DNA of 64,000 nt from Hydrolagus affinis (lineage: Eukaryota), in contig JAAILG010000009.1 of NCBI GenBank assembly GCA_012026655.1, forward strand, positions 1 through 64,000, in the 5' to 3' direction. Positions 36,798-63,087 of this stretch are shown here, piece by piece. Below the pieces are notes generated by a model. That model made no database searches, was not told the DNA's origin, and saw nothing but the letters and a program-made list of their open reading frames with translations. Position 1 is the stretch's first letter, and every line of letters starts with the position of its first letter. Made by a program: the position numbers and the translations under genes.

Positions 36798-37529
36798 CTA
36801 GATCCTTGTTGGGGAAGAACGATGGAGTGTTCGTGGAGGAGAGTGGCTGTGTGGTGGAGAAGTAGGGGGGCGGCGTGATGGAGGAGAGGGGCGTGGTGGT
36901 GCAGCAGTGTCTACTGGAGGGAGGGAGTTTGCTGGGGGGAGGGTGTTTGCTGGGGGGAGGGTGTTTGCTGGAGGGAGGGGGTCTGCTGGGGGGTGGGGGT
37001 TTGCTGGGGGGAGGGAGTTTGCTGGTGGGAGAGTGTTTGCTGGAGGTAGGGAGTCTGCTGGGGGGAGGGGGTCTGCTGGGGGGAGGGGGTCTGCTGGAAG
37101 GTAAGGTGGTTTGGGAGGATCTTTCGGAGCCGATTTGCTTTTGACTTTCAATATCCGATCCTTGGTGAATTTGAAGACCACTGAGCTGGCGCCCACCCCG
37201 GGGGGGAGGTCAAACTCGTTAGAAAAACCACGGATGCTAAAGCTGGTCGCCCCATTTAGACCTCTGTGCTCCACCAAGTGTTCTCCAAACACTTTTATTT
37301 TCCCGTCCTTGATCTTCAGAAACACCTCCTCTGGCTTCATGCACCCCAGCTGCAAACAGTAGGAAAACCTGCCCCGACAGGCGACCCGCGGGTCCTGCGG
37401 TGGACCTTGGGGAGGTGGGTTGGGAGTTGAGTCCTCCGGTGGCGGGGCGTCTTGAGGGGGGACTTTTGGCCGCTTTTGAGGAGAAGTCAGTGATTGTTTG
37501 GGCGTGGGAACCTGCGGTGGGTTTTGCAT
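36798..37529 (-). CDS. Cluster gene A: alpha-crystallin-domain (sHSP-like) protein with Pro-rich ends and PPADPL repeats
   Basis: FSYCLQLGCMKPEEVFLKIKDGKIKVFGEH...GFSNEFDLPPGVGASSVVFKFTKDRILKVKS fits the ACD strand pattern. ATG at 37529, shared upstream motif, AATAAA on the - strand at 36000-36005. Confidence 0.75.
   Translation of the reverse strand: MQNPPQVPTPKQSLTSPQKRPKVPPQDAPPPEDSTPNPPPQGPPQDPRVACRGRFSYCLQLGCMKPEEVFLKIKDGKIKVFGEHLVEHRGLNGATSFSIRGFSNEFDLPPGVGASSVVFKFTKDRILKVKSKSAPKDPPKPPYLPADPLPPADPLPPADSLPPANTLPPANSLPPANPHPPADPLPPANTLPPANTLPPANSLPPVDTAAPPRPSPPSRRPPTSPPHSHSPPRTLHRSSPTRI
36915..37098 (-). repeat. 18-bp coding tandem repeat encoding about 10 copies of PPA(D/N)(P/S/T)L
   Basis: Repeated gggggagggggtctgctg-type units; translation PADPLPPADPLPPADSLPPANTL... 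Confidence 0.9.
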
Positions 37530-37680
37530 TCCTTTCTGCCTATCTCTTGAAAAGCGAGGACAAAAACACAATCAGTCCTATGTAATAATTCGTATTTTTC
37601 TCGCCTTTTGCTGCCCCACTGAACCCCAAATCACAGGTTAATCTCTCCGGAAAGGGCAAGGTCAGACAGACAGGGCAAGT

Positions 37681-37755
37681 GTATTTCCTTACGCCACAGG
37701 TTTGTAAGCGTGAGATCACACTCGTCTCCTACACATCAGCGATGAAAAATGACTA
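37681..37755 (-). promoter_or_regulatory. Shared cluster upstream motif, copy A
   Basis: Coding strand: gtagtcatttttcatc...TGTGATCTCACGCTTACAAACCTGTGGCGTAAGGAAATAC, about 150 bp before the ATG. Confidence 0.7.
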
Positions 37756-39852
37756 CAGTTAAAATTGAAGCATTATTTTTTGAATAGAAAATAGTGGTGA
37801 TACATTTGACCCTAGGGAGCAATGGGTGAGTAGAAACCTGCGAAAAAAAAAAGAACAGCGTGTAAAAGAAAGTGTTTAGCCCACAATCGCTGTGATGTTC
37901 AGTGGGTCACTTTAATGGAGAGAATTGGAAGTTGAGTTTCACCATTTGCACGTTGTTTTTCTACTTTGGAATTAAGAAAAGGGATCGTCGACACTGTTGG
38001 GCGATTGGCAATTTACTGTTTTTTCAAGGAGTTGGGTGAGAGTTGCAGATAAGCACATAACCTTTGGTGGGAATTGGTTTTGATAGTGTTTCCAATTAAC
38101 AAAAATGACACCCGGAAAATACTCATTCTTCGGATGGTATTGGCAATTGTCAGGATATGGTCAGTCCTATTCGACTTCGATCCAGGCTAGGGTTACTTAT
38201 ACATTAGGTTGAAACGTTGGAAAATTAACTCATCTGAAAAAAAAACAAGGCATAAAAGTTGGGCTAAACTTTGTGCTGATTATTCGATTCTCCCAAGAAT
38301 TTCACCACGCCTATAGTTGAACTCGATTTTCTGAGCTGAACAGTAACATCATTATACATGTCCTATAGTGCGAACACTACTGATTAATTACTCACCCTCC
38401 TCTTCTCGCAAGAAATAATAAGTCCAATTGTAGCATTTCTCCGCAGTCTTAGAATTAAATCAGTGGTATTTAAATAATTGTCCTTTTTTTATTGCCACAG
38501 TTCACATGCCATACCATATGGTTACTGAATCGTTGAGAAACGCAATATAATTTTTTTTTTGTCCTTGATATGATTGAAACAGATGAATAAAACATAACGG
38601 TATTACTAGGGAGGGGAAGTGCTGAAGCGTCATTTTATGGAACCAACATTTGTGTAATGTGAGGGTTTGAGTCTTTTACCAGGACATTTAACATGGGGGA
38701 TTAACATGCTTTATCCCAACCATAAATTTGGAGATTTGGTCAAATGTTGCCATGTTCCCACCAATATTATTGCTAAACTCATTCAGTGACTGAGGCAAAT
38801 ATAACCGTCTCTCCTTGTTGAAGAAGTTCCTATTGCTACCATTCACGTGCATTCAATTTACCAACGTATTTGACAGTAAGAAACGCGCAACGTTCAAGTG
38901 AAGACATGTTAATGTTTAATAGTAAGGAAATAACCATTCAAAGTCTCAGAGAGCAGTGAAGATAGCCTTCTTTTTCATACAATTACTGTATTATTAACGC
39001 ATTTACCTTACATTTACTTTATTTTATTATCTGATTGCCTTGTATAATTAATGTATCTTTCGCGTGTGAAATAATGGTTTGTTTGTGTTTCACGGATATA
39101 GGAGTCGGGAAACTCAGTGTGGAAAAGAAAAGCAGATGAACGGTGATGAAAATACGATAGATTTCCGAATTATGGATGAGAGACAATTCTTGAGGTGAGT
39201 CCAATTTCAAACATACAATAGCAGTTCCTCTCCCATCGCAGTCCTGGCGACCATTTACTTTGTTAAACTGTATTATGCCACACGGAATGGAATATGTTAG
39301 ATCAGAAGACGGTAAAAGTATAACATTGCCTCAGTTAGTTAGTTAGTTAAGCGCAGTATAACTTATACTGATATACAGCCTTGCAATAATCCCTTCTCAA
39401 CTATAGGCTGTTATATAGACTTTATGATAAGATTTTGTGTGTTCCCACAGTGTTCCCATAACTAATAGCCTCACCCACTTTCCTCTCACAAGGACGTTAT
39501 ATGTAGGAGTGGGATTCATTGAATGACTGTAACAAACATTAATTCTGAATTTTATTTAACGAAAACATATTAGAGGTTCCTGATTCACGTTCTAAATTAA
39601 TGTAAAGGTAGATTTTCTGGAATATTTGGAATATTCCAGAATACAAACGGCTTTCTTTCTCTGTCTTTTCGGAAGGTGCGTTTTAACCTGTCCTGGCCAA
39701 AGTTTGCTCAGGAAAGACTTTGTCTGTCTTTCTGTCTCTCTCTGTCTCTCTCTCTCTCTGTCTGTCTCTCAGTCTCTCTCTGTGTTGGGAGCTCAGAGGC
39801 AGGATAGTCCAGGTTCCCCCTTCGAAGGAGCGGTCAAAACCAATCTGGAGTT

Positions 39853-40722
39853 TCAGAACAGTCGTGGGCAACAACAGAGCGGGAAATTTTCAAACGCGCC
39901 CTTGTTTTTTTTCTTCCTAACCCTTTTGGGGTCAGGTTTGCGTTTCCTGGGGGCAGGTTTCGGGCGGGTCCCACGGGTCTGAGCTGTTGGTTTCGAAGCC
40001 ATCTTCCCACCTGTGGGGTACTGCTCTCCAGTGGAGGTGTTGGTCGACTTGCTGGTACCAGTAGACTCCGGTGGACTGGACGCGATGGATAGTTTGCTTG
40101 TGTCGGTGGTGACAAGACGCATGGAGCGGACCGAAGACTTTTTGGAGTCGGTGGTTTCAGTCGGAGTGAAGCTGAGGGAACTCTTCGAGTCCGAGCTGCG
40201 GTCCGTGCTGGACTCGCGTCTCCGGCTCGGCTGTCTGGTGGATTTCATCGACCTCCCTACCGCCTGTAAATTGGTTCTTCTGGGCGCAGGGCGCCTCGGT
40301 TCCCAGGAACGATCGTCGGAGTCGTAGGTCTTGGGTTTGAAGGGTAATTTGAATCTGGGGTCTGACGGCGGAGATCTTCTGGAGGCAGCCCCTCTGGGGT
40401 GGCGACTTGCCTTGGACAGCTCCAGGTTCTGAACCTCGGCCGTCTTCGGCTCCGCTTTACAGGTGGAGTAATCGGCTTCAATCAGCAGCGTGTGCTTCTC
40501 GCACACGGTCAGACTCACGGTTCTCGGGTCCACCTCCTCGGGTAGGCTGAAGGTGTTGGAGAAGCCGTGGTAATTGCGCCTGAGCATGCCATCCTCCTCC
40601 ACCGTCATTTCAACCCGTTCGCCAGACACATTCACCGTACGGTCCTTGATGTTCCCTTTTATATTCTCTGGCAAAATATCCCCCAGGTTTATACGGACGG
40701 AAAACTTCGGGCGAGGCTTCAT
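39853..40722 (-). CDS. Cluster gene B: ACD protein with Ser/Thr/Arg/Lys-rich tail ending PLCCCPRLF
   Basis: FSVRINLGDILPENIKGNIKDRTVNVSGER...HGFSNTFSLPEEVDPRTVSLTV; shared upstream motif; AATAAA (-) at 39551-39556. Confidence 0.8.
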   Translation of the reverse strand: MKPRPKFSVRINLGDILPENIKGNIKDRTVNVSGERVEMTVEEDGMLRRNYHGFSNTFSLPEEVDPRTVSLTVCEKHTLLIEADYSTCKAEPKTAEVQNLELSKASRHPRGAASRRSPPSDPRFKLPFKPKTYDSDDRSWEPRRPAPRRTNLQAVGRSMKSTRQPSRRRESSTDRSSDSKSSLSFTPTETTDSKKSSVRSMRLVTTDTSKLSIASSPPESTGTSKSTNTSTGEQYPTGGKMASKPTAQTRGTRPKPAPRKRKPDPKRVRKKKNKGAFENFPLCCCPRLF

Positions 40723-40867
40723 TTCTACTGAACATTGGATGTATCTTTCCAGAAGTTTTCGCTTTCCACTCCTATTGCTAATATCCAGAGAGGGGTAGGA
40801 TCCATAGCTATCCCATGTTAGCCCGACTTGATGTAGTTCACTGAAGTTGTAATTTTCTGAAAAACGT

Positions 40868-40931
40868 CAGTGCATTTGCTTACGCGGCGGATTTGTGAGC
40901 GTTTGATGCACCTCTATGATGAAAATGACTA
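40868..40931 (-). promoter_or_regulatory. Shared cluster upstream motif, copy B
   Basis: Coding strand: tagtcattttcatc...TCAAACGCTCACAAATCCGCCGCGTAAGCAAATGCACTG. Confidence 0.65.
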
Positions 40932-41937
40932 TATACCGTTAAAGCATCAACATTGGTATAAACGGTGGCACCCAGCGCGTAATGGTTAAAACAATGCGTC
41001 CAAGAAAAATGTTCCAAGGAGTTTGTTACCTGGAGAGATGTTTGTTTTTCCCTCCCACCCTAAATTAAACTCCAATTCATGTCACAACCAGAAGCTTGCA
41101 GTATAAAGCCGATAGTATGGAGGGGGCGCGGGCAGGAAGTGAGCAACTGTAAATGCAAGTGATATGTAGATATATATATATATATATAAAGCGCAACTTC
41201 ACATTAGCTATAGGTGTTGGAACTCAGCAGAAAGGGTTAAAAATGGCGGCGTCTCCTTTTACTGCATGCAATACCTGCGACATGGAATGACTAGCTATTT
41301 CACCCACAAAATACAGTCAATTCACTGAACGGTGTATTCTGTGAAGCAGTTTGAGACGGCTGAACGACATGATAAGGCGTTATATAAAATGTTATATAAA
41401 ATGCAAGGATTATTATTTACTTTTATAAACCCAGTCCTTAATCCAACCATTAATTTTGCCTGAAATTGAACCATATGCGTAATGCAGAATCATTGCATAC
41501 ATATGCGGAGTAAGGCTGTTAAGCTTTCGTTTCTAGTCACATTATGTGGTATGGTGCAAAGGATAATACCATTCATCTGATTCGAAGGTTATATAAACGC
41601 TGAGTGCTTGATGTTAATTCTAAAGTTTCTTCTTCAACCGAGTTATGAAATATATTCACTCTGATTTAGAAGATCGGAATGTATTTTCAATCAGTTCCGA
41701 AAAAAAGTCAATTTCAAAAATGTATGTGAGTTGTACCTTTGTTCCAGTGAGACCCAAGTCAAGTTCTGTTGGGCTGTATGTGTGTGTCAGGCATATATTG
41801 AAAGTGTACTCTTTTCTCAAAGGATCTACACACATTCTCACAGAGGCCGACCCCCCACCCCCACCACCCCCACCCCAACACACTCCATGTGAATTTATGT
41901 TTCTTACATAAGAAAATGCTTATCTAAAAAAGACTGT

Positions 41938-42285
41938 GGAGTTCTGTAGCTCGGTGGTTAGAGCAAGCGGGAGGGTCTGGGTTCCATTCGGTCAGCTCAA
42001 AACACTGGGCAAGTTTCCTTACTCCACACGTCTCTGTTCGCCTAGCAATGGGGAGGAGCCCAGTTGTTAGTCAATTGGTAGATCACTTTTCCGGGGGTAT
42101 TCATTCCAAAAGAATTTGGCCACTCAATCCGAGACTGTTTGTGGGGACTGCTCTTTCACTCACTGTTTCCGAGATGATGCAAGTCGCATTTCCACAAAAT
42201 CCACAATCAACCCTATTTACAATGTGTCTGTGAAGTGCTTTGAAAGTTCCTGACGAGGTGCTATATGAAAAGAAAGGATTATAAT
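41938..42285 (+). mobile_element. tRNA-derived SINE copy
   Basis: gtagctcggtggttagagc head with the shared body and tail; a partial second copy follows at about 42315-42430. Confidence 0.75.
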
Positions 42286-43095: not shown

Positions 43096-43698
43096 CTAGA
43101 CTGACCCACAGCACAGAGGACAACATGGCTTTGGGGCTGGTGATACAGGCTGTAGTTTAACCCAATTGCTATTGGGTTCACAGGCTATCACAGAGGCAGG
43201 TTTGCGCTTATTATCTCGGCTGTCGCCCTTTGACTTGGAACCAGCTCCTCCTCCTTTCTTATTATCCTTCGAGTTCTGCGGGGATAAGTCCCTCACTGAT
43301 TTGCGATTCTCAGTGGGATTTTTGTGAGTTCTCGGCGGCTCCTGAAACTGTGTCTTGGAGCCAGCGTTCTTCCTGTTGGGCGCTCGTCCGGCTGCATACT
43401 TGTCCCCCTGGATGAGGATAGTGTCATCGTTGGGGACGGTCAGGATCAGGGAATCTGGATCCACGTCGTCGGGAAGGTTAAACTCGTTGGAGAAACCGTG
43501 AAAGTTATAGCTGATCTCTCCATTCTTGTTCTTGATCTCATCCACGTGTTGGCCAAACACGTTGACCCGACTGTCCCTGACTGTGGCGTTCACTTTGTGT
43601 GGGGATTTCCCATTGCGCAAATTGATTGCGACATTGTACTTCGGTGGGTGGGCGAAGGAAGCAGAGTGTAGTTTCTCTCGAGACTTTGGTTTTGACAT
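43096..43698 (-). CDS. Cluster gene C: ACD protein with basic tail ending PKPCCPLCCGSV (true start may lie in the N-gap)
   Basis: YNVAINL...VRDSRVNVFGQH...FHGFSNEFNLPDDVDPDSLILTV; frame is open up to the gap at 43745-43844; AATAAA (-) at 42926-42931. Confidence 0.78.
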   Translation of the reverse strand: MSKPKSREKLHSASFAHPPKYNVAINLRNGKSPHKVNATVRDSRVNVFGQHVDEIKNKNGEISYNFHGFSNEFNLPDDVDPDSLILTVPNDDTILIQGDKYAAGRAPNRKNAGSKTQFQEPPRTHKNPTENRKSVRDLSPQNSKDNKKGGGAGSKSKGDSRDNKRKPASVIACEPNSNWVKLQPVSPAPKPCCPLCCGSV

Positions 43699-45928
43699 GT
43701 TTCTCTGTGCCTCTCGGATGCCTAGAGATACAGGTTCCCGGGACNNNNNNNNNNNNNNNNNNNNNNNNNNNNNNNNNNNNNNNNNNNNNNNNNNNNNNNN
43801 NNNNNNNNNNNNNNNNNNNNNNNNNNNNNNNNNNNNNNNNNNNNGTTGGAAGAACAGAAAAATTATTGAGAAAAGTTGGACAGTTTGGGGGAGAAAAAAT
43901 AATGTGGTAAATATATTCACTAAAAAAAAGTTTTCACTTAATTTTAGCAAAATGATAAGTAATTGTACTGAAACTGGGGATGGTTTCACCGCATTGTCTG
44001 CTTCTGTCAGCCGCCCCCAATTTACATTGTTTTGTACTTCATGTTTAAACTTGCAAGAAAGGAGAGCTGTCCTTGTATATATAACACGCTGTTTTCACCC
44101 TTCCGAATGCCTTTAATGATTGGTGGTGATGCAGGGAAACAATTTATTCATGTTTCATGATTCTTTTTGTTTTTCACCATCGTGCTGGCCAAAGACGGCT
44201 GAACTAGTCAAAGTTAGTTTTGCTGTGCAATAATCTTGCAAACGCAAAAGCGTCAACTCAACCACCCTCCCAAGTCCTACGCCCTCCTCATTCGTCCCGC
44301 CAGCTCCACGATAGACAAAATCCAATGTAATAAAAACTCAGTCACTCATACATGTACAAATGCAAGATGTTTATGTGGGTCTGATTGTAACATACGCGAA
44401 TTACTCACTGCCGAGAATCTGGTGGTCGGTCCAATTTCGGAAAATAAGTAGGTGGACTGCTTCCAATCCCTTGAAGAGCACAGTCGCAAAGAAGCAAAGA
44501 AATCTAGTGATGAAAATATTTCTCTATAATTCAGCCCCAATGCAGCATTCCGTTTGCCACGTACTAATGAGTAAATCATTGGTATTTGTAACATCTTATT
44601 CATGTTGCCTTTCCCATTTGTTGTGTCCCTATTGATTCAGTGACATCAGAATGGGTTCATTGTTCTGTTGTGTGACAGGAGTCTGAAATGGTGAAGACTC
44701 ACAAACAAAATGTTGTAGTCATTTGGAGATGATTGCACCTCCATTTTTTAAAAAATACTGCATCAAATTTTCGAATTGAATACAATGGTAAATTAGAATT
44801 GACTAATGACTGAAGTCTGCCACATAGTAATTATGTGTGGTATACCCACTCTGTTTCATGAGAAAGGATAAAATATCTATATTACACATACCTAAGAATT
44901 ATTAAATCAAAAAAGGTTAAAATATCAGCAAGCCCTGTTTATAATAACCATAATAATAATCCTTGCATTTGATATAGTGCCTTATCATATCATTGAGATG
45001 TCCCAAAGAGCTTCACAGAATATTCTGAGTCTGCTTTCGCCACACTATGCAAGTGTTAGCCAGATTAAATAAATCAGATTCTCCTCACTATTAAGTAATT
45101 CCTGTATTTGAGAATATAAATTTGTTTGGAAGTGAGATTGTAATAATAAATAATGATTCCTGCATTTGGTACAGCAGCTTATGTTGGAAAGACGTCTCAA
45201 CGTGCGTCAAAGGATTTACTGTGAAGTGGAGTGACTGTGTATTTGAGGCAAATGTGGCAGGCTAATTGCGCACGAACAACCATGATATAAATGACTATTT
45301 TTTACTTTGAGAATTGTTGGCCAGGACATCTGGAGAAACTCCCTTTTCTTTTCAAATAGCCCAATGTGTTCTTTAACTTCCACCTGAACATGGTAACATC
45401 TCATTTGAAAGAGTGCACAGCCTTTTTTGCTGAGATTTGAATTCTGAATGACTTATTTGAGAATGAATGTGAGGAAACAAATCACTTATGTGTTTTTAAA
45501 AACACACTTTCAACCAAAAAGCCCTATCAGTTTTTGTCCTCTGTCTACTTTACTGTAAGTGTTTCAAAGGCTGATTGATATTTATCAGAAATAATTTCAG
45601 GAGCTGTTACTAATGTTATTTGTGATATATAATTATGGATACATGTGTAAATTAACTTGGAGAACTGAAACAAATATCAGACCTGCATTTTATTAAACGT
45701 CATTGACAACTGTTGTTTTCACTTCCAAATGAAATTGGTTTTACTGCACCAGCGGTTCCAGAAACGTTCTTTTTCTTCCCCATCATATATTAAATACCAC
45801 TCACGTCCATGTTGTACTTAATATTAGAAAGGTCAGAGTTTGCCTTCACCTTGTACTTAACTCTTGTTTAGGCTGAAGAGATTTGTATTGTAGAAGTTGC
45901 AAAATAACCTGTTGGGTTTCAAATAAGT

Positions 45929-48900
45929 TTAGTGTAACTCAGAGCAGCGGCACATCTTGGTATTTGATGACACAGGTGTTCTTTTCTTGTTGCAAATGCA
46001 TTGCAGCAGAAATCGTCCCTGGGAGCAATCATTTTCTTCATTGTCAGTGTCACGTTCCTCTGCCATAGATTCACTGGCTTGGTTGGAGGTTTTTAGAAAA
46101 GTCATTGGGCGTTTTGAGTTGGATATGGATTTACACTTGCAATGGATTCTTTGCGGGATGTTTGGTCGCCCTCGGCAATGGATTTTTGTATGATTTTGGG
46201 AAGTAGTTTCAGGAAGATATTGAGTGTTTTGTCTGGGGGATTTCACAGAAACCTGTGCACCCCCAGGTAGAGATTTCGAGGTAACGTGCACATCTTTAGG
46301 GAGGATTTTTATGAAATCTTGCTTGCTTGGAGTCTGTTGCTGCCTTACATTTTCTACATCTTGAGATTGGATTGGGAGCTGCGCATGTTGGGAAGATAAA
46401 TCCCCAGAAACTCGTCTGCTGTGAGAAGTGGACTGTGGGGCATCTTCCCCATCTTCATAGGCAGTTTCCGAGCGTCCTAGGCTTTGCCTTCCAACTTTTC
46501 TGCCATATTCTGATTCATGCAATCGCATTTCTGGGACATTTTGTCCATTTTGGTTAAGTGATTCCAGAAAACTTTGTCTGCTGTGGGGTTGATAGACTGG
46601 GGCATAACCCTTGCTTACAGCTCTGTTTTCTAAGAGATTTTGGCTTTGTCTGCTGATTTTCCTACCATTTTCTTGTACTTGAGGGTTCATTTCCAGGTTA
46701 CCTTGCATATGCTGAACTCCTCGTGTGCTTTCGGATGAAGTCAGTAGGTCCTGATTTTTATAAACAGTAAGTACCTGTATATCCAAAGGATCTTGACTTG
46801 ATCTGATGAGATTTCTGCCATGTTTTGATGCTTGGGATTGCATTGCTTGGACCTCTTGCAAATTTGGGATGTTCGATTGATGAGTACCTCGTTTGCTGTG
46901 GGGCAGAGAACCTAGGTCATGTTCCCCAGTTAAAGATTTTGGTTGTGGTGGATCTTGCCTTTTGAAATTCTTGCCAATTTCCTGGACAGGCAATTGCAAT
47001 TCTTGGGCAATTCGCCCGTTTTGATCATTTACTTCCCGTCTGCTTGGCATTGGAGTTGTGAGGGCAGAATCCTTATAAACAGTATGTGTCTCCAAGATAT
47101 CTTGGCTTTGTCTGCGGAGATTTCTGTTGTTTTTTGGTTGCATTTCTTGCTCAGATTGGAAGTATGATGCCCGAGTATTTTGTCTGCTGTGTTTCGTCTG
47201 CAGAGAAACTAGATCATATTCCGCAGGTATAGTTTTAGCTGGTATTGAAATTTGGTTTTGTCTGCTGCCATTTCCGCCATTTTCTGGGAACTGGGGATGT
47301 GTTGCTAGGATATCTTGGATGGATATTTCCTCAGATATTTGTTTACTGTGGGATTGATATACTAGGGCATATTTCTTACCCAAATTATTAGTTTGGAAAG
47401 GACCTTGGCTTTGTCTAAGTGCATTTAATCCAGTTTGTGATACTTCTTGTTTGATTTCTGAAATACTTTCACAGTATTTGAAAGGAAATTCTTGGGAAAC
47501 CCATCTACTGGGGGGTTCACTTACAAAGTCAAATTCCCAATTGATAGGACAGGATTCTGCAAAATCTTCTTTTAGATCTTGGCCTTGCCTTCTGACTTCT
47601 CTGCTGCTTTGTGGGGTTTGGGTTTCTGATAGATCTTGCTGATATTGATTGGAAAATACCTGAGAAACTGGCCTGCTTTGGGAAGAGGATTTTCTGGAGT
47701 GCTGCTTATCTTCTGTATTAGTGTGTACAGAATCTTGGCTTTTTCTGTGAGCTTTCCTTGCATTTTGTGAGATTTGGGATTGGGTTCCTGAAATAACTTT
47801 TCCAACTTTAGAAGCAGATTCCTGAGAAATTTGCCTGCTTTGCAAAGAAGGCTTTCGGGCATAATGCTTATTTTCAGAGAACATTTGCATCGGATCTTGA
47901 CTGTTTTGTTTTGGGACTTTACTATCATTTGGTGGGTTTTCTGATTGAGCTTCCGGCCGATCCTGCTGATATTGGAAAGAACTTTCATGGGAATTGTGTC
48001 GGCTTTGCAATTTCGGGGTAGATTGCTTATGTTTAGAGTTGGATTTTGGAAGATCTTGGCCATCTTGGCTGATAACACTCTTGACATATTGTGGGGATTG
48101 GGAGTAAGCTTCTGGAAGATCTTGCTTGGATTGGGAGGGACCATGCATGGCAGTTTGTCTGTCTTGAAAATCTCTCAGATGTGTTTTTAGCAGTACTTGA
48201 CAGTTTTGGAGATGAAAGTTTTTGGCATGTTGTGGATCTTTGCTAACTAATGCTGAGTCATAGGAACACAGGAACAGAGGAATATTAGAAATTAAATATT
48301 GCCCATATTGGGTTGTATATTCAGATAGACTTGGTTCAACTTGAGGATGGTACTCTGGTTTAAGTTCCTTGTGTCTAGAGTGGGTTTCCAACTGATTTGG
48401 GCTGTGACTGTTTCTAGAATGTTGTGGGATTTCGCTGTGGGTTTCTGAGAAATCTTGGTCATATTGGGAATGATATTCCTGGGAACCTCGTATGCTATGG
48501 TGATCAGACTTTAGAGCATATCGTTCATCAATAAATTGGTTCCCTGTGATATCCTGACTGTAGAGTTTAACAAAATATTGTGGGTCTTGGGATTCTAAGT
48601 CTTGGTGTCCATATCCAGAATATAATTTCCGAGGAATTTGCCTGCTATGGGGATGGACTCTTGGAGCATATTGTTTATCTTCAGTGTGAATTCCTATGAA
48701 ATTTTGGCTGTTTCTCTGAACATCTCCATATTGTGGGTCTTGGCTTTCTGGGAGATCATGCCCATTTTGAGTGGATAATTCCTGGGAACCTTCATGTTTA
48801 TTTTGAGTCTTATTTTGATTTTCCTCTGAGGAACGATTTGGAAGATAATTCTGTTGCTGGTGAGTGGATGACAAGTTCTCTTTGTGCTCTTCAAAAGAGC

Positions 48901-51900: not shown

Positions 51901-52177
51901 GACTACTAGTAACAATAAGGTTCAGAGTATCTGGATCTGTGTCTTCAGGGAGATTGAATTTGCTGTAAAACCCATGAAAGACATTTCTGGTCATTCCATT
52001 TTCTTCCTGAAGATTTACTGATTGATCTCCAAAGACATTTACTCTTCTTCCATTGATTGTTGAATTCACTTTATTCGCAGAAATATGTCCAAGATTTAAA
52101 CAGATAGAAAAATCTTGCAACTTTGTTTCATTGCTTCTTCTTTGCTTTGTATTATCAAACAGATCTTTTGGATCCAT
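45929..52177 (-). CDS. Cluster gene D: 2082-aa single ORF with N-terminal ACD and a very long repeat-rich S/Q/E/K/P tail
   Basis: 6.2-kb uninterrupted ORF with ccATGG start; FSICLNLGHISANKVNSTINGRRVNVFGDQ...FHGFYSKFNLPEDTDPDTLNLIV; internal repeats; AATAAA (-) at 45689-45694. Confidence 0.85.
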   Translation of the reverse strand: MDPKDLFDNTKQRRSNETKLQDFSICLNLGHISANKVNSTINGRRVNVFGDQSVNLQEENGMTRNVFHGFYSKFNLPEDTDPDTLNLIVTSSHTVTVTATRYKHLSTATTDKQITNNMTNQPDMDHGVSTTMNEHFISTNQEQNQLPEATNISLHSLTEKPSVHQPVTTESQQKVTSKWAIEDQPEIVDLEGRIPNVSATPSHVSALPTDLEEGNKVSIPLLEENDEYESHSPPERDEPIKPDPMALKSSSKSGSLTGIPTAINPIPAVHLPNEAKKANHRSISFSKETSQLSSKEEQTIQDHSSEKGSNLDKQKKIPSSQKKPKLAKILPNKKSKESQFEPAKSSKERDSMSTKSSSLTANAFQVLNDGTESSPGIPETPNQDLPISMEPNAVEEPAENMQPKSEQQDNLPNLSTEEEKGPVLDKQKNVPSLQKGSMDSNSIFKRKDKETTQVKSANFSLENEELRSTLYPLTGKDSIDSNQDTVSHKNIQESETQNLPISVEPSSFEEHDENLLPTKQKNHPSLSSEKSSDLSKQKKIFSSRKKPKLAKHIFNRKSSTTSAKSSTKSENFGTQSSSLTSEVFQVLYHDTESSPGSPEPPNQDPLDSMEPNAFEEPAENMEPKSEQQDNVPNLSADEEEGPVLDVQKKISSLHKSSTGSKNIFNGKGKETTKAKSALENEELRSILHPLTGKGSQDSNHNTESHRSIPEPETQDQPISMVPSSFKKHDETLPPTEDEQNNHSSPSSDEGSDLSKQNKIPSSKKKPKLAKNPFNKKSKETSQFKPSNSSTESDSIGKKSSSLMPKVSQALNHGTESSPGSPTPPNQDLPTSIELHSFEGHDENFNDQQNNQTNLSLEEGPGPQNLPVSMEPNLSEEHIDKLSLTDEQQGNILNLSSEETSDLHKQKEIQPPTKEPTFSKIVFNGKDSEIPGSAKSSLGNDGLRTRPLPLSPELSSNSSSESQSPSSSPEPEKRDLPISMTPTPFEEYNENFQPSDKPQDNLSDLSSEESLVNEKQQNGPSPQNKLSKNIIHGESKETIQLRPKESPSESGNVIAKSALPVTPKESKISKPDIESLPGSPEPKNQDLPIYMEPSSFEEHKENLSSTHQQQNYLPNRSSEENQNKTQNKHEGSQELSTQNGHDLPESQDPQYGDVQRNSQNFIGIHTEDKQYAPRVHPHSRQIPRKLYSGYGHQDLESQDPQYFVKLYSQDITGNQFIDERYALKSDHHSIRGSQEYHSQYDQDFSETHSEIPQHSRNSHSPNQLETHSRHKELKPEYHPQVEPSLSEYTTQYGQYLISNIPLFLCSYDSALVSKDPQHAKNFHLQNCQVLLKTHLRDFQDRQTAMHGPSQSKQDLPEAYSQSPQYVKSVISQDGQDLPKSNSKHKQSTPKLQSRHNSHESSFQYQQDRPEAQSENPPNDSKVPKQNSQDPMQMFSENKHYARKPSLQSRQISQESASKVGKVISGTQSQISQNARKAHRKSQDSVHTNTEDKQHSRKSSSQSRPVSQVFSNQYQQDLSETQTPQSSREVRRQGQDLKEDFAESCPINWEFDFVSEPPSRWVSQEFPFKYCESISEIKQEVSQTGLNALRQSQGPFQTNNLGKKYALVYQSHSKQISEEISIQDILATHPQFPENGGNGSRQNQISIPAKTIPAEYDLVSLQTKHSRQNTRASYFQSEQEMQPKNNRNLRRQSQDILETHTVYKDSALTTPMPSRREVNDQNGRIAQELQLPVQEIGKNFKRQDPPQPKSLTGEHDLGSLPHSKRGTHQSNIPNLQEVQAMQSQASKHGRNLIRSSQDPLDIQVLTVYKNQDLLTSSESTRGVQHMQGNLEMNPQVQENGRKISRQSQNLLENRAVSKGYAPVYQPHSRQSFLESLNQNGQNVPEMRLHESEYGRKVGRQSLGRSETAYEDGEDAPQSTSHSRRVSGDLSSQHAQLPIQSQDVENVRQQQTPSKQDFIKILPKDVHVTSKSLPGGAQVSVKSPRQNTQYLPETTSQNHTKIHCRGRPNIPQRIHCKCKSISNSKRPMTFLKTSNQASESMAEERDTDNEENDCSQGRFLLQCICNKKRTPVSSNTKMCRCSELH
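48830..51280 (-). repeat. Coding tandem repeat in gene D, about 330-bp units paired into about 660-bp higher-order units
   Basis: cttagccagtttgggtttcttt (KKPKLAK) at about 51195, 50525 and 49868; QDLPISMEP-like motif recurs about every 330 bp. Confidence 0.85.
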
Positions 52178-52245
52178 GGTTTCATTGATCCAGTTTTATT
52201 CAACTTGGAAGTGTATAATTTTCTGGAAATGACAAGATAGAAAAC

Positions 52246-52296
52246 AAGTGCTTGCTTGCATCTCAGATTTGTAGGCAAATTATTTACTGCTAAAAT
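52246..52296 (-). promoter_or_regulatory. Shared cluster upstream motif, degenerate copy D
   Basis: Coding strand: gtcattt...TGCCTACAAATCTGAGATGCAAGCAAGCAC, same position relative to the ATG, with the CpGs lost. Confidence 0.4.
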
Positions 52297-54382: not shown

Positions 54383-54445
54383 CTTTCATCACAGTGGCGA
54401 GGTAAGGCGTGGGCCGAGAGACCTGTGGCGTAAGCAAAGACACTG
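54383..54445 (+). promoter_or_regulatory. Shared cluster upstream motif, copy E
   Basis: ctttcatcac...ACCTGTGGCGTAAGCAAAGACACTG, about 70 bp before the ATG. Confidence 0.65.
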
Positions 54446-54513
54446 TGGCGTTTGCATATATGCTGTCTCGCTTTCACAAAGTTATGAATCTGTGAATTTT
54501 GCAAAGCAAATCA

Positions 54514-55029
54514 ATGGATCCCCTGGGTTCCGGACCACAACCAGATAACAGGACTGGCCCCAGCAATCCCAAAAAGTTTTCCGTCTTCGTAAACCTTGGG
54601 AATGTCGCTCCTGACCAAGTCGTGGTGAAAATCAAGGACAGGACAATGACTGTCTCTGGGGAACATATGGAGAAGGTGCGGGATACCAGTGGGGTGGCGA
54701 AATATACTTTCCACGGTTTTTCCAACGAGTTTGACCTACCCGCTGGTGTGGAGTTCAATTCCCTGGTCTTCACGGTCCTGGACAACCACGCAATGAAGAT
54801 TGAAGTGGAGGAACCTCAACCTCAGGACCACACTTCAAACACTGAAGTGCAACCGTGTGCCTCCATGTGTTTCACCCCCAAGTCATCCGTCTTTACCCCC
54901 ATGAGGTGTTCCAACCAGAGAAAGGTCCACTTAGCAACAAAACTCAACAGCCAGAAAGGCCACAGTCATCGACAAGAACAGCCTCATCGGGCCAGGTCGA
55001 TCTCCCCCAGCCATTGCTCCAGAAATTAA
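54514..55029 (+). CDS. Cluster gene E: compact ACD protein, the most ODF1-like by eye
   Basis: MDPLGSG...FSVFVNLGNVAPDQVVVKIKDRTMTVSGEH...KYTFHGFSNEFDLPAGVEFNSLVFTV; shared upstream motif; ATTAAA at 55364-55369. Confidence 0.8.
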   Translation: MDPLGSGPQPDNRTGPSNPKKFSVFVNLGNVAPDQVVVKIKDRTMTVSGEHMEKVRDTSGVAKYTFHGFSNEFDLPAGVEFNSLVFTVLDNHAMKIEVEEPQPQDHTSNTEVQPCASMCFTPKSSVFTPMRCSNQRKVHLATKLNSQKGHSHRQEQPHRARSISPSHCSRN

Positions 55030-55804: not shown

Positions 55805-56100
55805 AGGGGGTCCTGTAGCTCAGTGGTTAGAGCACTCGCCTTACAAGCAAGAGACCTAGGTTCGATTCCAGACAGGACAAAACCTTGGGCAAGTTTCTTT
55901 ACTCCATGTGCCTAGTAATAATCCCTCCAAAAAAAATCAATTGTTTATTTCAATCCATGACTGTTTGTGGGACTCTGCTGTGCACAGTTGGCTGCCACAT
56001 TATGCCCACAAATATAATCAATTCATTTTATAGTATATTCTGTGAAATGCTTTGAGACGTCCAGAAGACATGCTATATTAGATGCAAGTTTTATTATCAT
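55805..56100 (+). mobile_element. tRNA-derived SINE copy
   Basis: gtagctcagtggttagagc...ggttcgattcc head, colinear with the copy at 7082-7389. Confidence 0.85.
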
Positions 56101-57670: not shown

Positions 57671-57971
57671 TCTTTGCGTGCTGTAACACAGACACACACA
57701 CAGACAGACAGACAACACACTGCCACGCGTGCTCCCGGGAACCAAACCAACCTTGGTTAGAACAAACCTGTTCCTCGCCCATAAGAGTCCAGGTCCCCGC
57801 TCGCTCTCTAATTTCCCACTCTTTCCTCAACTGCAGGGATCTGAATCATCGGAATAATTAAACAAATCATCTGCATAGGTTTCAGTGCCCTATGTTTAAA
57901 AAATAATAATTCTCCGGCCTCCCGGTTGTATCATTTTTCTTGAAGACTAAAAAAAAAATCAACACTGTGAA

Positions 57972-58050
57972 GTTATTTTTTTTCATCACATAGGTGAAAG
58001 ACGATGTGAGTGATCTCACGCTTACACGTTTGTAGCGTAAGCAAATCCTG
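57972..58050 (+). promoter_or_regulatory. Shared cluster upstream motif, copy F
   Basis: tttttcatcac...GTGATCTCACGCTTACACGTTTGTAGCGTAAGCAAATCCTG, about 80 bp before the ATG. Confidence 0.7.
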
Positions 58051-58128
58051 CGTGTTTTGTTATTATCAATAACACCGTTTTCCACGGTCATAGGACAAGA
58101 GTTATGCCGAGTTATGAACCTGTAAATT

Positions 58129-59320
58129 ATGCCAAAGGGATCAGGAGCGGATCCGAATAATTCATCTCAAGAATCGGCGGCTGAAAACAACAAAGCAACA
58201 GGGAAGAGTAACTCACACAAGGGGGAGGATGAGGAGCAGTGTCTCGATGGAACCAGGCAGAAAGCGTTCAGCGCGACTTTAAACGTGGGCGATGTGAACG
58301 TGGATGAGATGACTGTCAAGGTGAAGGGCAGAAAGCTTTGCGTGTCTGGTCAACACGTAGAGAACCGGGCCAACGGGTTCTGCTTTCAAAGCTTCAGCGG
58401 TGAATTTACTCTCCCTCTGGACTTGGACCACGCCACCCTGACCGCCACCATTTCCGACGACCACACCATGAGAATCGAAGGGTACCGAGCCGCGCATATC
58501 AGTTCGAGTTCGCAGACGGACGAGAGGCTCTCGGAGGTGAGAGCGGCGCTGGCGTTGAGGAAACGCGCCGCCTGCACCGCCGGTCGCAAGACACCGGATG
58601 CCAAACGCCAGCAGTTAATCAGCAGGAAAAGCAGCGTCTGCTTTGCTAACCGCGCCTCGAACGCGTCCAACCGCCTGGATTACACCGATCACATTGCCAC
58701 CGAACACATCTGCTCCACCATAGTCACCATCCCCCAGAGGTGCAAGTCCAAAGTGAACTGCAGCATCAGGAGCACAACCTCCAAGGCTTCCTTCTCACTC
58801 AACCCCAGGAACCCCAAGATAGACATGACTCACGCTTTCCCCACCAGCGAGGTCCAACCGATCAATGACATCTCCCGCCAACCCACCAACACCTCACTAC
58901 CCGATACCTGGCTTCAGACCAACACCAGCACCAATAACACCGCCGCCGCCGCCACCGCCGCCGCCACGCCTGTTAGCTCAACCGTTGGTTTGAANNNNNN
59001 NNNNNNNNNNNNNNNNNNNNNNNNNNNNNNNNNNNNNNNNNNNNNNNNNNNNNNNNNNNNNNNNNNNNNNNNNNNNNNNNNNNNNNNNNNNNNNCTCGGT
59101 AAAGCCTCTTGCATGACTGCACTTGCCAGCACCCTGCACCCAATCCAATTTGCATAACAGATCGATAACTACAGAAGAGATCATCACCTCAAATCCACCC
59201 CCCCCTCCCCCCCCCACCCCACCACCACCCTCCTCAGGCACCATCAGTGGGAGAGTCTGTCAAAAAATGACAGAACCAAACTCCCCATTGCGAAGCAATA
59301 AAGAGCTTCTAGGGAAATGA
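58129..59320 (+). CDS. Cluster gene F: ACD protein with S/T/A-rich tail, interrupted by an N-gap; 3' end uncertain (59157 or 59320)
   Basis: FSATLNVGDVNVDEMTVKVKGRKLCVSGQHVE...FQSFSGEFTLPLDLDHATLTATISDDHTMRIEG; gap at 58995-59094; a Pro-rich frame after the gap ends at 59320; AATAAA at 59444-59449. Confidence 0.75.
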
Positions 59321-61003
59321 TACCAATCGCTTGGATGGATTGAAGGAAGCAGTTTCTACGACTTCGAGTCTCGTCTGGCGATGGAGAAGAATGATCTCGC
59401 CTTCAATTGGTCTCCGAGCGCCCAGCCACAATCTGTAGTTATCAATAAATAAAACGCAGATTTGAGCTTGTTGTTGCCATTGTCCAAATTCATTCACACG
59501 TGTAAGATCTTCCAATTGGGTGTTGTAACTAACAAGGAATTCGAATTGATTTACCTCCCACGAATTCAGAGCAGGACATGGCAGGTCAGTGTCACGATTG
59601 TAATAAGCTTGCACTTTGGGGTTTGCTAGGTCACTCAGCTTGTCAATCAAACGATTTATTTGTTTAGCTTTTGGCGATCACTCCAGTTGTTCCTTTGAAA
59701 GCGACCGACTGCAATGGATTCAAGAAGATGGCCCAGAGGAAACTTCTCAATGAAGCAAAGTGTAAGGTGTCACCAATATAATCCTGTACAAATGTTTCAG
59801 TTCGATGCAGAATATAGAGTTGTTGTGGTCCTGGACTAACATAGCAAACCCTGATAGTGCTGATGTAGTGTTTTGGAGAACTCAACACCCTGAATATGTC
59901 ATATCCTCCCAGTACAATCGTTGAAAGGCTTTGCACTGTATGAAGTCTAAGGTTTTTTTTTTTTACTTTGAACCAAATTAGTACATTATTGGCCAAATAC
60001 AAGTAAGAGTTTTGAAAGCGATAACTGCAAACAGGACTGAGCCCTTTTGAGGATTCTCAACAACGGGAGGAAAGCTTCTCCCACTGTCAGTACCACTATT
60101 AGTCCTTAGCTGCTTTTATCACCTGGTACTGAACCACATAACCCCGATGATTTGTCCACTTTAAATTCCATCAACCTATTATTTACCACTTTGGTGTCGA
60201 TATTTATATCAAACAGTCCCTTGCAGCTGACTGCTTTCTTCTAAAAATTTCTCTATAACTGTTTGATGATATTAATATTAATCTTAGGCGTTGTGACTTT
60301 CTTTCCAGATTTACATTCAAGTAGTGATCTGCTAAACACACAATTCACACGATGAAGGTATACACCGAACTGTATGTCCAGAACAGTGGAGTCTCGGAGA
60401 CGAGTACGTTCGAGTCCAGTAGATGTTGGCAAGTCTGGAGGTAAACATGGTAGCGACTACATCCAACAGTATCGATACTATATTTACAGTCTTATCTCAT
60501 TGTAGCATCCGATACTGTATGATCTTAAACAACACCATGCAAACCTCATAGCTGGCACAATTACAAGGACATGATTTGAAAGCCATCTTTGGGTTAGGGT
60601 TAGGGTTGGTGGTATTTCCCAGTTCACATATGGATTTCAGGTCATATACTTTCATGGGTATATTCGAAGTTATATCACCGATATCCGCTCGCCCAATATT
60701 TTGTGGTTAATCGCACATTCCCCGCCAACCCTGGCCGAGCAAATACGTCGGGCCCTTTGTGGCGTAATATCTTTATTGCAACTTTGGAGCATCCCTCTAC
60801 AACAACAACAACAACAACTTCGATTTACATAGCGCCCTCCACGCCGGACGGCGTCTCTCTCAGAGCGCTTCAAATACACTCTGCACACTATACAGTGTCA
60901 GCTCGCCCGCCGCACATCATGTCACTTCCAGTGACACAGTTGCAGGACATAAAAACTCTCTTGTAAAGCAATGCCGCAGGTCACAGAAGTGTACAATGAA
61001 GCC

Positions 61004-61043
61004 TGTGATCTCACGCTTACAAACACGTGGCGTAACAAATACA
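61004..61043 (+). promoter_or_regulatory. Shared cluster upstream motif, copy G
   Basis: TGTGATCTCACGCTTACAAACACGTGGCGTAACAAATAC, almost identical to copy A. Confidence 0.7.
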
Positions 61044-61076
61044 TCTGTCGCATGTGTCTCCGTTGCGATCAACCTG

Positions 61077-61356
61077 ATGGACTCTGTGAATGATGATAGT
61101 AAGATTTTTTTTTCAGCGACGGACCCTTCCATACATCTCCTCCCAGTTGGGACGTTGGTAACACTTAGATAAAAGAAGAAGAAGAAGAAGAAGGCAACTG
61201 AAAGGCGGCAGCGATTCGTGAAGATCTCGCTTTGGGTCTGCTCGTCTCTCCTCTTGGTGAAAAACCACACTTGGGGAACAGATTGAGAGAGAGGCGGAGC
61301 TGAGGGGTACCTCGAAGAGAGCTGATTCCAGAGCTGATCGTGCCCTCGGTGCTGGC
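61077..61356 (+). pseudogene. Disrupted 5' part (ancestral start and decayed ACD) of cluster gene G
   Basis: The ATG GAC frame reads MDSVND...VTLR*KKKKKKKATERRQRFVKISL...VKNHT; a frame change then gives LGEQIEREAELRG, which runs into the 576-aa ORF. Confidence 0.45.
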
Positions 61357-63087
61357 ATGCCTTTTGCTGACACTGTGATCCTCACCATATCAAGTGACCG
61401 GCCGGTCAACATCCGGAGGGATGACCAGCCCACCACCAATGCTCACAACAAGTGCATCAGCATCCGCTGCCACTCACGCAACCTCAGGCTCCGGATCAGC
61501 GCCGAGTCAAAACGCGGCGCCCAAGTCCGCGTTGCGCAAAGGAAACGCATTTCCTCCTCCCGGAGTCGCGCCCGCAAGAGGTCCCGTACTTGTCCCAGAT
61601 TGACCTCCGGGAGACACACTCGCCGCCGTTCTCCGCCGGTGTCCGCCGGCCCCCTCCGCCGGCGACCCCTTCCCTCCAAATGCGCTCGAAGGAAACCCAA
61701 GCGATCGCTTTGCGGGAGGAGCCCGCGTCCCACGGCGGGCGGCTTCTCAAGTCGGAAGAAACGCAGGCGCCTCCTCAAACCCCCTGGAAATCCGTGCCCG
61801 ACCCCCGTCTTGCCTTCCCCCAAACGGAGGAAGCGTAGGTTGTCCAAGAGATACGCTCGGCAGAGGCGAGAGCCAAGTCCCAATCCCACCACCAGTGGGA
61901 TGTCAACGCCGAGGCAGTGTCTCTGCTTCGTTACCACTACTCTGGACAACCGCACCCCTTTTCCAGCCGGTGCCTCCCGGCATTGCACCTGCCCAGCTTC
62001 CCTCCGACAACCCTTCTCCAAACCGCGGGTTCGGAGGCCGATCCAACCCCCACCCGACTTGTCGGGAGGAACCAGCCGCGATCCCGAAAGGGCTGCCGTC
62101 CAATTCACCCAGTCGGCTTTCAGAAAATGCGAGGAGACGTTTAGGAACGTCATGGGGGCTCTGAGGATCACCAGCCCCCCTCCCACTGCTCACAACCCGT
62201 GCAACCGCGCCTGCGATCCGGTCCTGAGAAAGTGTCTGCCAACTGGGAATCCTCAGCCACACAAAATGCCCTGCGGGACCCCTCACCCCGCCACCTCCGA
62301 TAGAAGCGTCCAATGTAGTCGCCATCCCTCTCCTCCGAGCAACTGTGAACGTTTGATCCCAGAAACCAGGGTTGAGGCTTTTAGCCAGACCGGGCTCCCC
62401 TCCTCCCCCCACCGCGGGCTCCCGACTCGGCCCAAGCGCAAGAGGGCTGCAGATCCCGTGGTCCACATCTGCTGCGTCACTGGGACTTCCTCGTTCGCGT
62501 CGCCTCCACCCGAGGAACCGGCCGGCAGCAAGAGCAACCTGGAATCCCCGTCAAGGGATTCAACCCCCCGGAGGTTTGGCCGTCAGAGACGCCTCCCCAA
62601 ACGGGAGAAACAGACCTGTCCAAGGTGCCTGAAACCTACATACAGGAGCTTCCCGGTTTACTTGGCGGAAACGTGCCTCGGGCCTCAGGATTTGGCCTCG
62701 GTCCCGCCTGTCAACTCACAGGACCAGACGAGCTGGAGACAGAACGAGCCGAAGCCTGGATGTGACCCATGTACCACGTCCCCACGATCAGTTTCGGAAA
62801 TATTTTACATGCCACCGAAACCCTCTAAGACCGTCAGAAATTCCAGTGAAACTATGTGGTGTAGCTCCCCTCAACCCGGTACCATCAGGTTTTGTAAATC
62901 TGCTGAACCCAGTGCGGTGAAATCCTGCAGCCCGGCAGCCCCCAGCTCAATGACCTCGTATGCCTCTTCCAAACCCAGTACATCCACCATCTTCATGTCT
63001 CCGGAGATGTGCCTTTTCACTCCAAACCCCGCCTCGGTTCCTCGCAACACATCACCAGATAACTACCCGAGAACGTGTCAAACCTAA
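61357..63087 (+). CDS. Cluster gene G: 576-aa Arg/Cys/Pro-rich ORF with only a remnant of the ACD
   Basis: Long GC-rich ORF. N-terminal DTVILTISSDRPVNI aligns with the last ACD strands of C, D and F; upstream motif near-identical to gene A's; AATAAA at 63442-63447. Confidence 0.65.
   Translation: MPFADTVILTISSDRPVNIRRDDQPTTNAHNKCISIRCHSRNLRLRISAESKRGAQVRVAQRKRISSSRSRARKRSRTCPRLTSGRHTRRRSPPVSAGPLRRRPLPSKCARRKPKRSLCGRSPRPTAGGFSSRKKRRRLLKPPGNPCPTPVLPSPKRRKRRLSKRYARQRREPSPNPTTSGMSTPRQCLCFVTTTLDNRTPFPAGASRHCTCPASLRQPFSKPRVRRPIQPPPDLSGGTSRDPERAAVQFTQSAFRKCEETFRNVMGALRITSPPPTAHNPCNRACDPVLRKCLPTGNPQPHKMPCGTPHPATSDRSVQCSRHPSPPSNCERLIPETRVEAFSQTGLPSSPHRGLPTRPKRKRAADPVVHICCVTGTSSFASPPPEEPAGSKSNLESPSRDSTPRRFGRQRRLPKREKQTCPRCLKPTYRSFPVYLAETCLGPQDLASVPPVNSQDQTSWRQNEPKPGCDPCTTSPRSVSEIFYMPPKPSKTVRNSSETMWCSSPQPGTIRFCKSAEPSAVKSCSPAAPSSMTSYASSKPSTSTIFMSPEMCLFTPNPASVPRNTSPDNYPRTCQT

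Follow-up and report, generated by a model that had tools for sequence, protein, structure and literature searches.

The first 64,000 nucleotides (nt) of contig JAAILG010000009.1 from Hydrolagus affinis (GenBank assembly GCA_012026655.1, forward strand), referred to here as the window, were analysed for seven long open reading frames (ORFs; genes A to G) and for the genes that flank them. Six of the seven, A to F, share a block that is identified as the alpha-crystallin domain (ACD) of the small heat-shock proteins (sHSPs) by profile searches and structure models. The cluster is read as an old tandem ACD family of cartilaginous fishes, the members of which would be co-regulated, ODF1-like structural proteins, possibly of sperm. 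We regard this reading as evenly poised between right and wrong, and its sperm part, which is drawn by analogy, as tentative and rather more apt to fail than to hold. Vertebrate sHSPs are usually counted as HSPB1-10 plus a few extras of fishes and frogs. The cluster points to an old further sHSP clade of at least ten orthologue groups, so far confined to cartilaginous fishes, in which the ACD heads disordered proteins that can be very long, with up to 2082 amino acids (aa).

Alpha-crystallin domains and their relatives

All seven ORFs were found from 36.8 kb on, with the coordinates and the shared block that a first-pass annotation, made from the letters of the window, had described. The minus strand carries genes A to D and the plus strand genes E to G, with the spacer between D and E as the point from which the two sets diverge. 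In the comparison with Pfam HSP20 (PF00011; cut-off 20.8 bits) that the annotation had proposed, five of the seven proteins passed (A 28.7, B 36.6, C 22.5, E 39.6 and F 28.3 bits); D, with 18.2 bits, fell slightly under the cut-off, and G was without a match. A family hidden Markov model (HMM) was built from 32 family domains and run on all 2660 six-frame ORF pieces of the window. Exactly six domains were obtained, at 94–129 bits (A 94.3, B 126, C 113.5, D 118, E 129, F 100.5), and the next piece had an E value of 1; this piece (55831–56052) was rejected, as its translation looks unlike an ACD. Across the six paralogues the domain is 24–38 % identical to that of E, with six invariant columns; in F the loop is five residues shorter.

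Structures were modelled by using AlphaFold for two of the six domains, those of E (from a 16-row alignment) and of D (first 130 residues). The predicted local distance difference test (pLDDT) score was about 90–96 in the domain and about 40–60 outside it; in the D model it was 93–96 over residues 21–100. The modelled strands of both proteins follow the metazoan ACD pattern, including the long hairpin. The top Foldseek matches in the PDB were the ACDs of human HSPB1, HSPB6 and alphaB-crystallin (E value about 2e-6), with target-normalised template-modelling (TM) scores of 0.68–0.82; the best match of D was alphaB-crystallin (TM score 0.82).

A profile search of 1.84 billion representative proteins returned 1520 proteins at an E value of 1e-3 or less and 115 at 1e-10 or less. 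Thirty of the best matches were looked up: 21 came from nine chondrichthyan species (Chiloscyllium punctatum, Scyliorhinus canicula, S. torazame, Rhincodon typus, Heterodontus francisci, Leucoraja erinacea, Amblyraja radiata, Narcine bancroftii and Callorhinchus milii), two from invertebrates and seven were unnamed Logan sequences. The two invertebrate matches are multi-ACD proteins of a firefly (P0002) and a nematode (P0003). More than 100 of the 150 best matches hold at least two ACDs per chain, and the family HMM counts up to six; multi-ACD proteins such as P0002, P0003, P0004, P0010 and P0025 score high through domain number and fall outside the family in the tree described below.

The ACD genes of the window pair one to one with orthologue groups in sharks, rays and/or the chimaera. 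Within the ACD, identity is 45 % for A (partners P0026 and P0029), 60–64 % for B (P0011, P0007, P0006 and P0012), 57–64 % for D (P0016, P0013, P0017, P0027 and P0030), 59 % for E with P0005 and 72 % for F with P0018, a 116-aa fragment of a C. milii protein of which P0160 is the longer model. C is 49 % identical to P0008 over the full length, E is 42 % identical to P0009 over 156 aa, and F is 59 % identical to P0160 across all of its 288 residues, tail included. Because each gene of the window has orthologues of its own, the duplications are old; as the sequence comparisons show, they predate the split of the window's lineage from the elasmobranchs. The lineage-specific expansion of the first-pass annotation, if taken as a young, species-level event, was therefore abandoned. 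Consecutive locus tags occur in Chiloscyllium (chiPu_0003377-3383), Leucoraja (LOC129707384-6) and S. torazame (scyTo_0003307-3310), and therefore the genes are clustered in those genomes also. Two further Chiloscyllium proteins, P0041 and P0056 (chiPu_0011803/4), sit on a different contig, and there may be a second cluster in this species.

For the maximum-likelihood tree, 72 hand-picked domains were aligned over 101 columns, with multi-ACD proteins represented by their best domain only. Outside the tree stood 92 of the 150 best matches (mostly multi-ACD), 62 of 70 further Hsp30-type matches and HSPB1-8, which were compared with the family by bit score only. The label "other" is our own, and P0002 and P0003 alone are named as invertebrates. 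All 32 family rows fall on one side of a branch with bootstrap 92 and Shimodaira–Hasegawa-like approximate likelihood ratio test (SH-aLRT) 91; in this tree, made without HSPB1-8, the members thus form one group, as the first-pass annotation implied, and are not scattered among known sHSP groups. Four ODF1-like rows (P0064, P0080, P0088 and P0150) are sister to the family (95/83, starred), and an Hsp30/HSPB9/11 group of 13 rows is separate (99/96). Among the orthologue groups, those of C, D and F are starred, A and E have 100/93, and B stands beside four elasmobranch partners. The partner of F is the Callorhinchus protein (100/88), and B branches outside the B-type genes of sharks and rays.

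The same four ODF1-like proteins are the best single-domain matches outside the family. P0064, from the frog Discoglossus pictus, bears the name outer dense fiber protein 1 (69.5 bits, E value 1.8e-14) and has ODF1 clusters as its nearest in the Atlas (0.91). The second-nearest named group is represented by P0087, a "heat shock protein 30C-like" of Chiloscyllium (62.3 bits, rank 87). With the same profile, family members score 77–115 bits, ODF1-like proteins 62–69.5 (P0150, 53.4), Hsp30C-like 62.3, human alphaB-crystallin 48–52, HSPB6, HSPB1 and HSPB8 42–44, alphaA-crystallin 38–42, HSPB7 30, HSPB2 28 and HSPB3 22.

A further character was taken from the dimer interface. In the column that aligns with the Arg of HSPB1 Phe-Thr-Arg-Lys-Tyr, which we take to be the equivalent of alphaB-crystallin R120, no family row has Arg: of the 32, 18 have Asn, six Ser, three each Lys and Glu, and one each Gly and Thr. 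The residue is Asn in all four ODF1-like rows and Arg in 9 of 13 rows of the Hsp30 group and in 10 of 15 other rows. For the family and the ODF1-like rows this character agrees with the tree. Together these comparisons lend moderate support to ODF1 as the nearest named relative of the family, ahead of Hsp30 and HSPB9. ODF1, so far an isolated and odd member of the sHSPs, would gain close relatives that share the loss of the interface arginine.

In the public databases the proteins are already present without a function, under names such as "hypothetical", "uncharacterized" or "SHSP domain-containing", and under misleading ones: "mucin-4-like", "transcription factor MYB120-like" and "EF-hand calcium-binding domain-containing protein 5-like". 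A literature search for the family, its accessions or the locus found no paper; supplements, possibly with expression tables, lay outside that search. The statement that no such family had been described accordingly agrees with the literature searched and does not extend to the databases. A word-indexed protein search with E gave ten candidates, none scoring, which is a limit of that method, since the profile search finds the family; an Atlas search with E gave generic sHSP clusters only (0.87, below the lead level of 0.9). In practice, the current names mislead and some public models fuse neighbouring genes.

Tails, upstream block and gene G

Outside the ACD block the paralogues do not align with one another, as first described. 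The tails have 11–20 % hydrophobic residues, are dominated by Ser, Pro, Arg, Lys and Thr, and were modelled at low confidence (pLDDT about 50–60); the isoelectric point (pI) is 9.2–11.3 in six of the seven proteins and 6.0 in D. A has a Pro-rich tail (38 % Pro, pI 9.2) with an 18-nt tandem repeat that encodes Pro-Pro-Ala-Asn/Asp-x-Leu units. The tail of B (Ser/Arg/Pro/Lys/Thr, pI 11.3) terminates in a Cys-Cys-Cys-Pro motif, and C ends in Cys-Cys-Pro-Leu-Cys-Cys-Gly, which is conserved in its shark orthologue P0008. F has a Ser/Ala/Thr-rich tail. That of D comprises 1979 aa (Ser/Gln/Glu/Pro/Lys, pI 6.0); a self-BLAST of the protein gave no internal pairs, and its imperfect repeats surfaced with a DNA repeat finder instead. 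The annotation had called the tails fast-evolving. Between orthologues they are conserved, with identities of 49 % for C along its whole length, 42 % for E (156 aa), 59 % for F (288 aa) and 52 % for G (326 aa). In proteins of other species (P0041, P0056, P0160 and P0164) a Pro-Gly-Thr/Ser-Arg/x-Cys motif occurs twice near the C terminus. Over gene D (46000–52000, plus strand) the AT skew is −0.25 to −0.28 and the GC skew +0.15 to +0.25; several antisense ORFs of 150–200 aa in this region are probably by-products of the biased composition.

In size, A, B, C and E (243, 289, 200 and 171 aa) fit the sHSP range of about 12–43 kDa, and D (2082 aa) is outside it. Each gene is a single ORF, an anatomy that suggests intronless genes, and each has a candidate poly(A) signal (AATAAA or ATTAAA) 139–447 nt past its stop, in agreement with the first description; for F it is AATAAA at 139 nt.

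A block of about 65 nt, made up of two to three boxes, lies 76–155 nt before the ATG in A, B, E and F; in G the distance is 317 nt. A 17-mer of the block has three exact copies (A, F and G; 0.11 expected), a 15-mer has ten matches with up to three mismatches (1.66 expected; five in gene upstream regions, five elsewhere), and the first box has four matches (0.35 expected). Local alignments of the F block were made with the 400 nt upstream of each gene and with 176 control windows (maximum score 29, 95th percentile 24); the scores were 65 for A, 49 for G, 35 for B, 28 for E, 18 for C and 14 for D. By these counts and alignments, the block is common to five genes; the copies of A, B, F and G are clear, and that of E is acceptable. 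The upstream motif had been ascribed to six genes; D is not above the control, and the block of C is probably hidden by an assembly gap (43745–43844). Heat-shock elements, in a simple consensus scan of the window, numbered 22 with up to one mismatch (24.5 expected), and none lay in the block. A CRE-like (cAMP-response element) core of the block was considered and rejected, there being no TGACGTCA with up to one mismatch in any upstream region.

Gene G had been credited with a remnant of the ACD. Neither Pfam nor the family HMM detects it (nothing at an E value of 10 or less in 60900–61420), and six genes only have an ACD; the alleged remnant is a by-eye likeness in the first 20 or so residues, and an in-frame stop closes the frame just upstream. 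The protein is rich in Pro, Arg, Ser and Cys (15 % Pro, 29 Cys, pI 11.2). Its first 254 residues, which are Arg/Pro-rich, match nothing among the sequences compared. Its distal 326 aa have a conserved counterpart in the chimaera: residues 255–570 are 52 % identical (E value 1e-67) to residues 310–627 of P0160 (C. milii XP_007883821.1). P0160 runs from an F-like part through a G-like part to a second ACD, the subtype of which is different. P0001 (Chiloscyllium punctatum GCC24974.1) runs from a basic, Cys/Pro-rich part to an ACD; G and the basic N-terminal part of P0001 show no significant similarity (best E value 1.1). Both proteins appear to be public models that chain two or three neighbouring cluster genes (three in P0160). 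P0160 is read in this way because F is closed by a stop and an AATAAA of its own, with no donor seen at its end, and because G has a separate upstream block.

Two other origins of G were considered and rejected. Splicing of G onto F, as implied by the P0160 model, finds no visible GT donor at the end of F. For G as a recent copy of F, 57900–60900 and 60901–63600 show no DNA or protein similarity except in the upstream block. These alignments show G, which now has no recognisable ACD, to be a coding neighbour that is conserved in the chimaera together with the gene order.

Two assembly gaps touch the cluster. The one at 43745–43844 lies upstream of the first ATG of C and outside the coding sequence: because C aligns almost end to end with the 191-aa shark orthologue P0008 (residues 4–200 of C with residues 2–191), its coding sequence does not cross the gap, and the stretch of the ORF that reads through the run of N is an artefact. 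The gap at 58995–59094 lies in the tail of F. Both flanks resemble neighbouring stretches of P0160, weakly, the right flank by only about 20 residues; F probably continues through the gap to a stop at 59157, with length and frame across it unproven. The 288 aa given for F are thus a lower bound, and no residues were supplied for the gap.

The cluster adjoins NEURL2, and SNX21-like and ACOT8-like coding pieces were also found in the window; their order is presumably that of human 20q13.12. A third assembly gap (31079–31178) lies within a G+C-rich stretch at 30–32 kb (52 % G+C, about 40 % around it), which may be a CpG island or the first exon of some gene. A 150-aa ORF at 27499–27951 (plus strand) has no Pfam match; by eye it resembles what we take to be the C-terminal part of a retroelement reverse transcriptase. 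One DNA-like sequencing run covers the stretch, with contigs that differ by 1.3–6 %; in run X1 the summed contig depth is thousands-fold above the flanks at 35900–36299 and 41100–41499, which marks interspersed high-copy repeats. Three RNA runs (single-cell libraries under another organism code) gave partial reads on two repeats only, within 35900–41899, and are uninformative on expression either way.

Table 1. Positions of the cluster genes, their upstream blocks and other features of the window.
Feature	Position	Strand	Remarks
Gene A	36798-37529 from first ATG (ORF 36798-37571)	−	243 aa; ACD about residues 54-137, then Pro-rich tail
Tandem repeat in tail of A	36909-37097	−	18-nt period, 10.2 copies, 87 % matches
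Upstream block of A	37684-37748	−	ends 155 nt before ATG; exact 17-mer; 15-mer with 1 mismatch; box 1 with 3 mismatches
Gene B	39853-40722	−	289 aa; ACD from about residue 5; basic tail
Upstream block of B	40875-40925	−	ends 153 nt before ATG
Gene C	43096-43698 from first ATG (ORF 43096-43989)	−	200 aa; ACD and basic tail
Assembly gap	43745-43844		47 nt upstream of first ATG of C (43698), outside coding sequence
Gene D	45929-52177	−	2082 aa, single ORF; ACD about residues 20-103, then 1979-aa tail
Imperfect internal repeats in tail of D	48820-51291	−	spacing about 330 and 660 nt, 60-84 % identical
Upstream block of E	54383-54438	+	ends 76 nt before ATG; exact 15-mer; box 1 with 3 mismatches
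Gene E	54514-55029 from first ATG (ORF 54499-55029)	+	171 aa; best-scoring ACD and short basic tail
Upstream block of F	57980-58045	+	ends 84 nt before ATG; reference copy for local alignment
Gene F, part before gap	58129-58994 (ORF to 59157)	+	288 aa; ACD about residues 44-121
Assembly gap	58995-59094		inside tail of F
Gene F, probable coding end after gap	59095-59157	+	20 codons and stop
Upstream block of G	60981-61040	+	ends 317 nt before ATG; exact 17-mer 350 nt before ATG
Gene G	61357-63087	+	576 aa; without detectable ACD
SNX21-like coding piece	19957-20712	+	PX and TPR
ACOT8-like coding piece	23314-23763	−	acyl-CoA thioesterase
NEURL2 coding piece	34572-35477	−	Neuralized domain

Function of the cluster

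In the preferred reading, that of co-regulated structural proteins, the ACD, its interface altered, would serve as a module for pairing or assembly, and the tails would supply bulk and cross-linking through charge and disulfides; the assembly module with structural tails of the first-pass annotation is retained here as something that we infer. The shared upstream block would turn the genes on together in one cell type, and the product would be an insoluble cytoskeletal or matrix structure rather than a stress chaperone. G would have lost a recognisable ACD and kept its conserved, basic, Cys-rich tail and its upstream block. By analogy with ODF1, the likeliest site would be the spermatid and sperm, for example the two accessory columns of the cartilaginous-fish flagellum. 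This site is favoured because of the kinship with ODF1 and because elasmobranch sperm flagella have two accessory columns, of unknown make-up (PMC11856307). Should the proteins turn out to be components of sperm or of another structure, they would account for the composition of something that only cartilaginous fishes have, and would offer a natural test of ACD assembly without the canonical dimer contact.

Several observations weigh against this reading. The link to ODF1 is made through four sequences, one of them named, over 101 columns and with moderate support, HSPB1-8 being compared by bit score only; the tails, of up to 1979 aa, have no similarity to ODF1, and the evidence for a sperm role consists of this kinship and of tail chemistry, by analogy. 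Not every member fits: the tail of D is acidic to neutral where the others are basic, and the upstream block of this gene does not rise above the control. Since the upstream regions hold no canonical CRE, a CREM-type spermatid promoter is not indicated. The absence of expression evidence is counted on the same side. In the tail of A, 18 listed differences from a related genome (a partial table) fall 8, 6 and 4 at codon positions 1, 2 and 3, which gives no sign of purifying selection; the region is a tandem repeat, in which misalignment is likely.

An alternative is a structural or matrix role outside the male germ line, for example in skin, egg-case gland, lens or sensory jelly, where the ACD would likewise pair the proteins and the tails would build the material. 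The absence of a CRE speaks for it, and the architecture fits it equally well; the composition of the giant, repetitive, Ser/Gln/Glu-rich tail of D presumably resembles that of secreted or cornifying matrix proteins. Against it stands ODF1, a sperm-tail protein, as the nearest named relative, and the translations show, by eye only, no N-terminal hydrophobic, signal-like stretch; we hold this alternative possible, though doubtful. Stress-inducible sHSP chaperones, the local counterpart of the intronless, clustered Hsp30/HSPB11 genes, would account for the intact ACD fold and for single ORFs in tandem, which we take to be the arrangement of Hsp30, and Hsp30C-like proteins rank second among the nearest named groups (62.3 bits). 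Such a function appears improbable: the family stands apart from Hsp30/HSPB9/11 in the tree, heat-shock elements are neither enriched nor present in the block, none of the 32 family rows has the interface arginine, no chaperone sHSP is known to have tails like these, which reach 1979 aa, and sharks keep separate, numerous Hsp30C-like and HSPB11-like genes.

It is very improbable that the ORFs are decaying, non-functional relics or artefacts of gene prediction. G, which lacks an ACD and has an in-frame stop just upstream, the want of transcripts in the uninformative RNA runs, the differences in the tail of A without a third-position bias (partial table) and the chaining of neighbouring genes in P0160 and P0001 would suit that explanation. 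Opposed to it are a frame of 2082 codons that stays open in D in DNA of 41 % G+C, six intact domains, orthologues conserved in sharks, rays and the chimaera with their tails, and the conserved upstream block.

A narrower form of the preferred reading concerns origin. The cluster might go back to a sister copy of ODF1 that arose in the early vertebrate genome duplications and was lost in bony vertebrates. In cartilaginous fishes this copy would have survived and expanded to a dozen or more genes, the products of which build the sperm accessory columns peculiar to these fishes; we think this unlikely. It is supported by the position of the family as sister to ODF1. The human NEURL2 region (20q13.12) and ODF1 region (8q22) presumably lie in paralogous blocks that also contain SDC4/SDC2 and MATN4/MATN2. 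Paralogy of the syndecan and matrilin regions is documented in PMC1464127. If the sister-copy origin were true, cartilaginous fishes would have found an independent, ACD-based answer to what mammals solve with nine outer dense fibres.

Comparison with known systems

Mammalian ODF1 (HSPB10) is a structural, non-chaperone sHSP with C-terminal Cys-x-Pro repeats. The family resembles ODF1 in that Asn replaces the interface Arg, within a common Phe-Ser-Asn-x-Phe-x-Leu-Pro stretch, and in the Cys-rich ends of B, C and G, which are shared with one ODF1-like row, P0088. B and C end in short Cys-Cys-Pro motifs, and no Cys-Gly-Pro repeat array was seen in the genes of the window. ODF1 is a single gene, whereas many tandem paralogues are found here; the cluster lies beside NEURL2 and not at what we take to be the ODF1 locus from the human positions, and the family is sister to ODF1, not nested within it.

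With Hsp30, HSPB11 and HSPB9 the family has single-ORF genes in common, presumably often in tandem in the Hsp30 group also. These proteins form their own group in the tree, keep Arg in 9 of 13 rows and comprise about 220 aa without long tails. To alphaB-crystallin, HSPB1 and HSPB6 the likeness is one of fold, with six strands and a long beta6+7 hairpin, at a sequence identity of 17–27 %. With the family profile these proteins score only 42–52 bits, and the family differs from them in the loss of the interface Arg, in its long tails and in an ACD that stands at the N terminus, without an N-terminal region of the sHSP type. As an analogy only, the architecture also recalls S100-fused-type proteins of the epidermal differentiation complex (such as filaggrin and hornerin), which likewise join a small N-terminal fold to long, repetitive, fast-changing tails and occur in a tandem cluster. 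Those are tetrapod skin genes that contain introns and carry an S100 domain instead of an ACD, and no homology is implied by the comparison.

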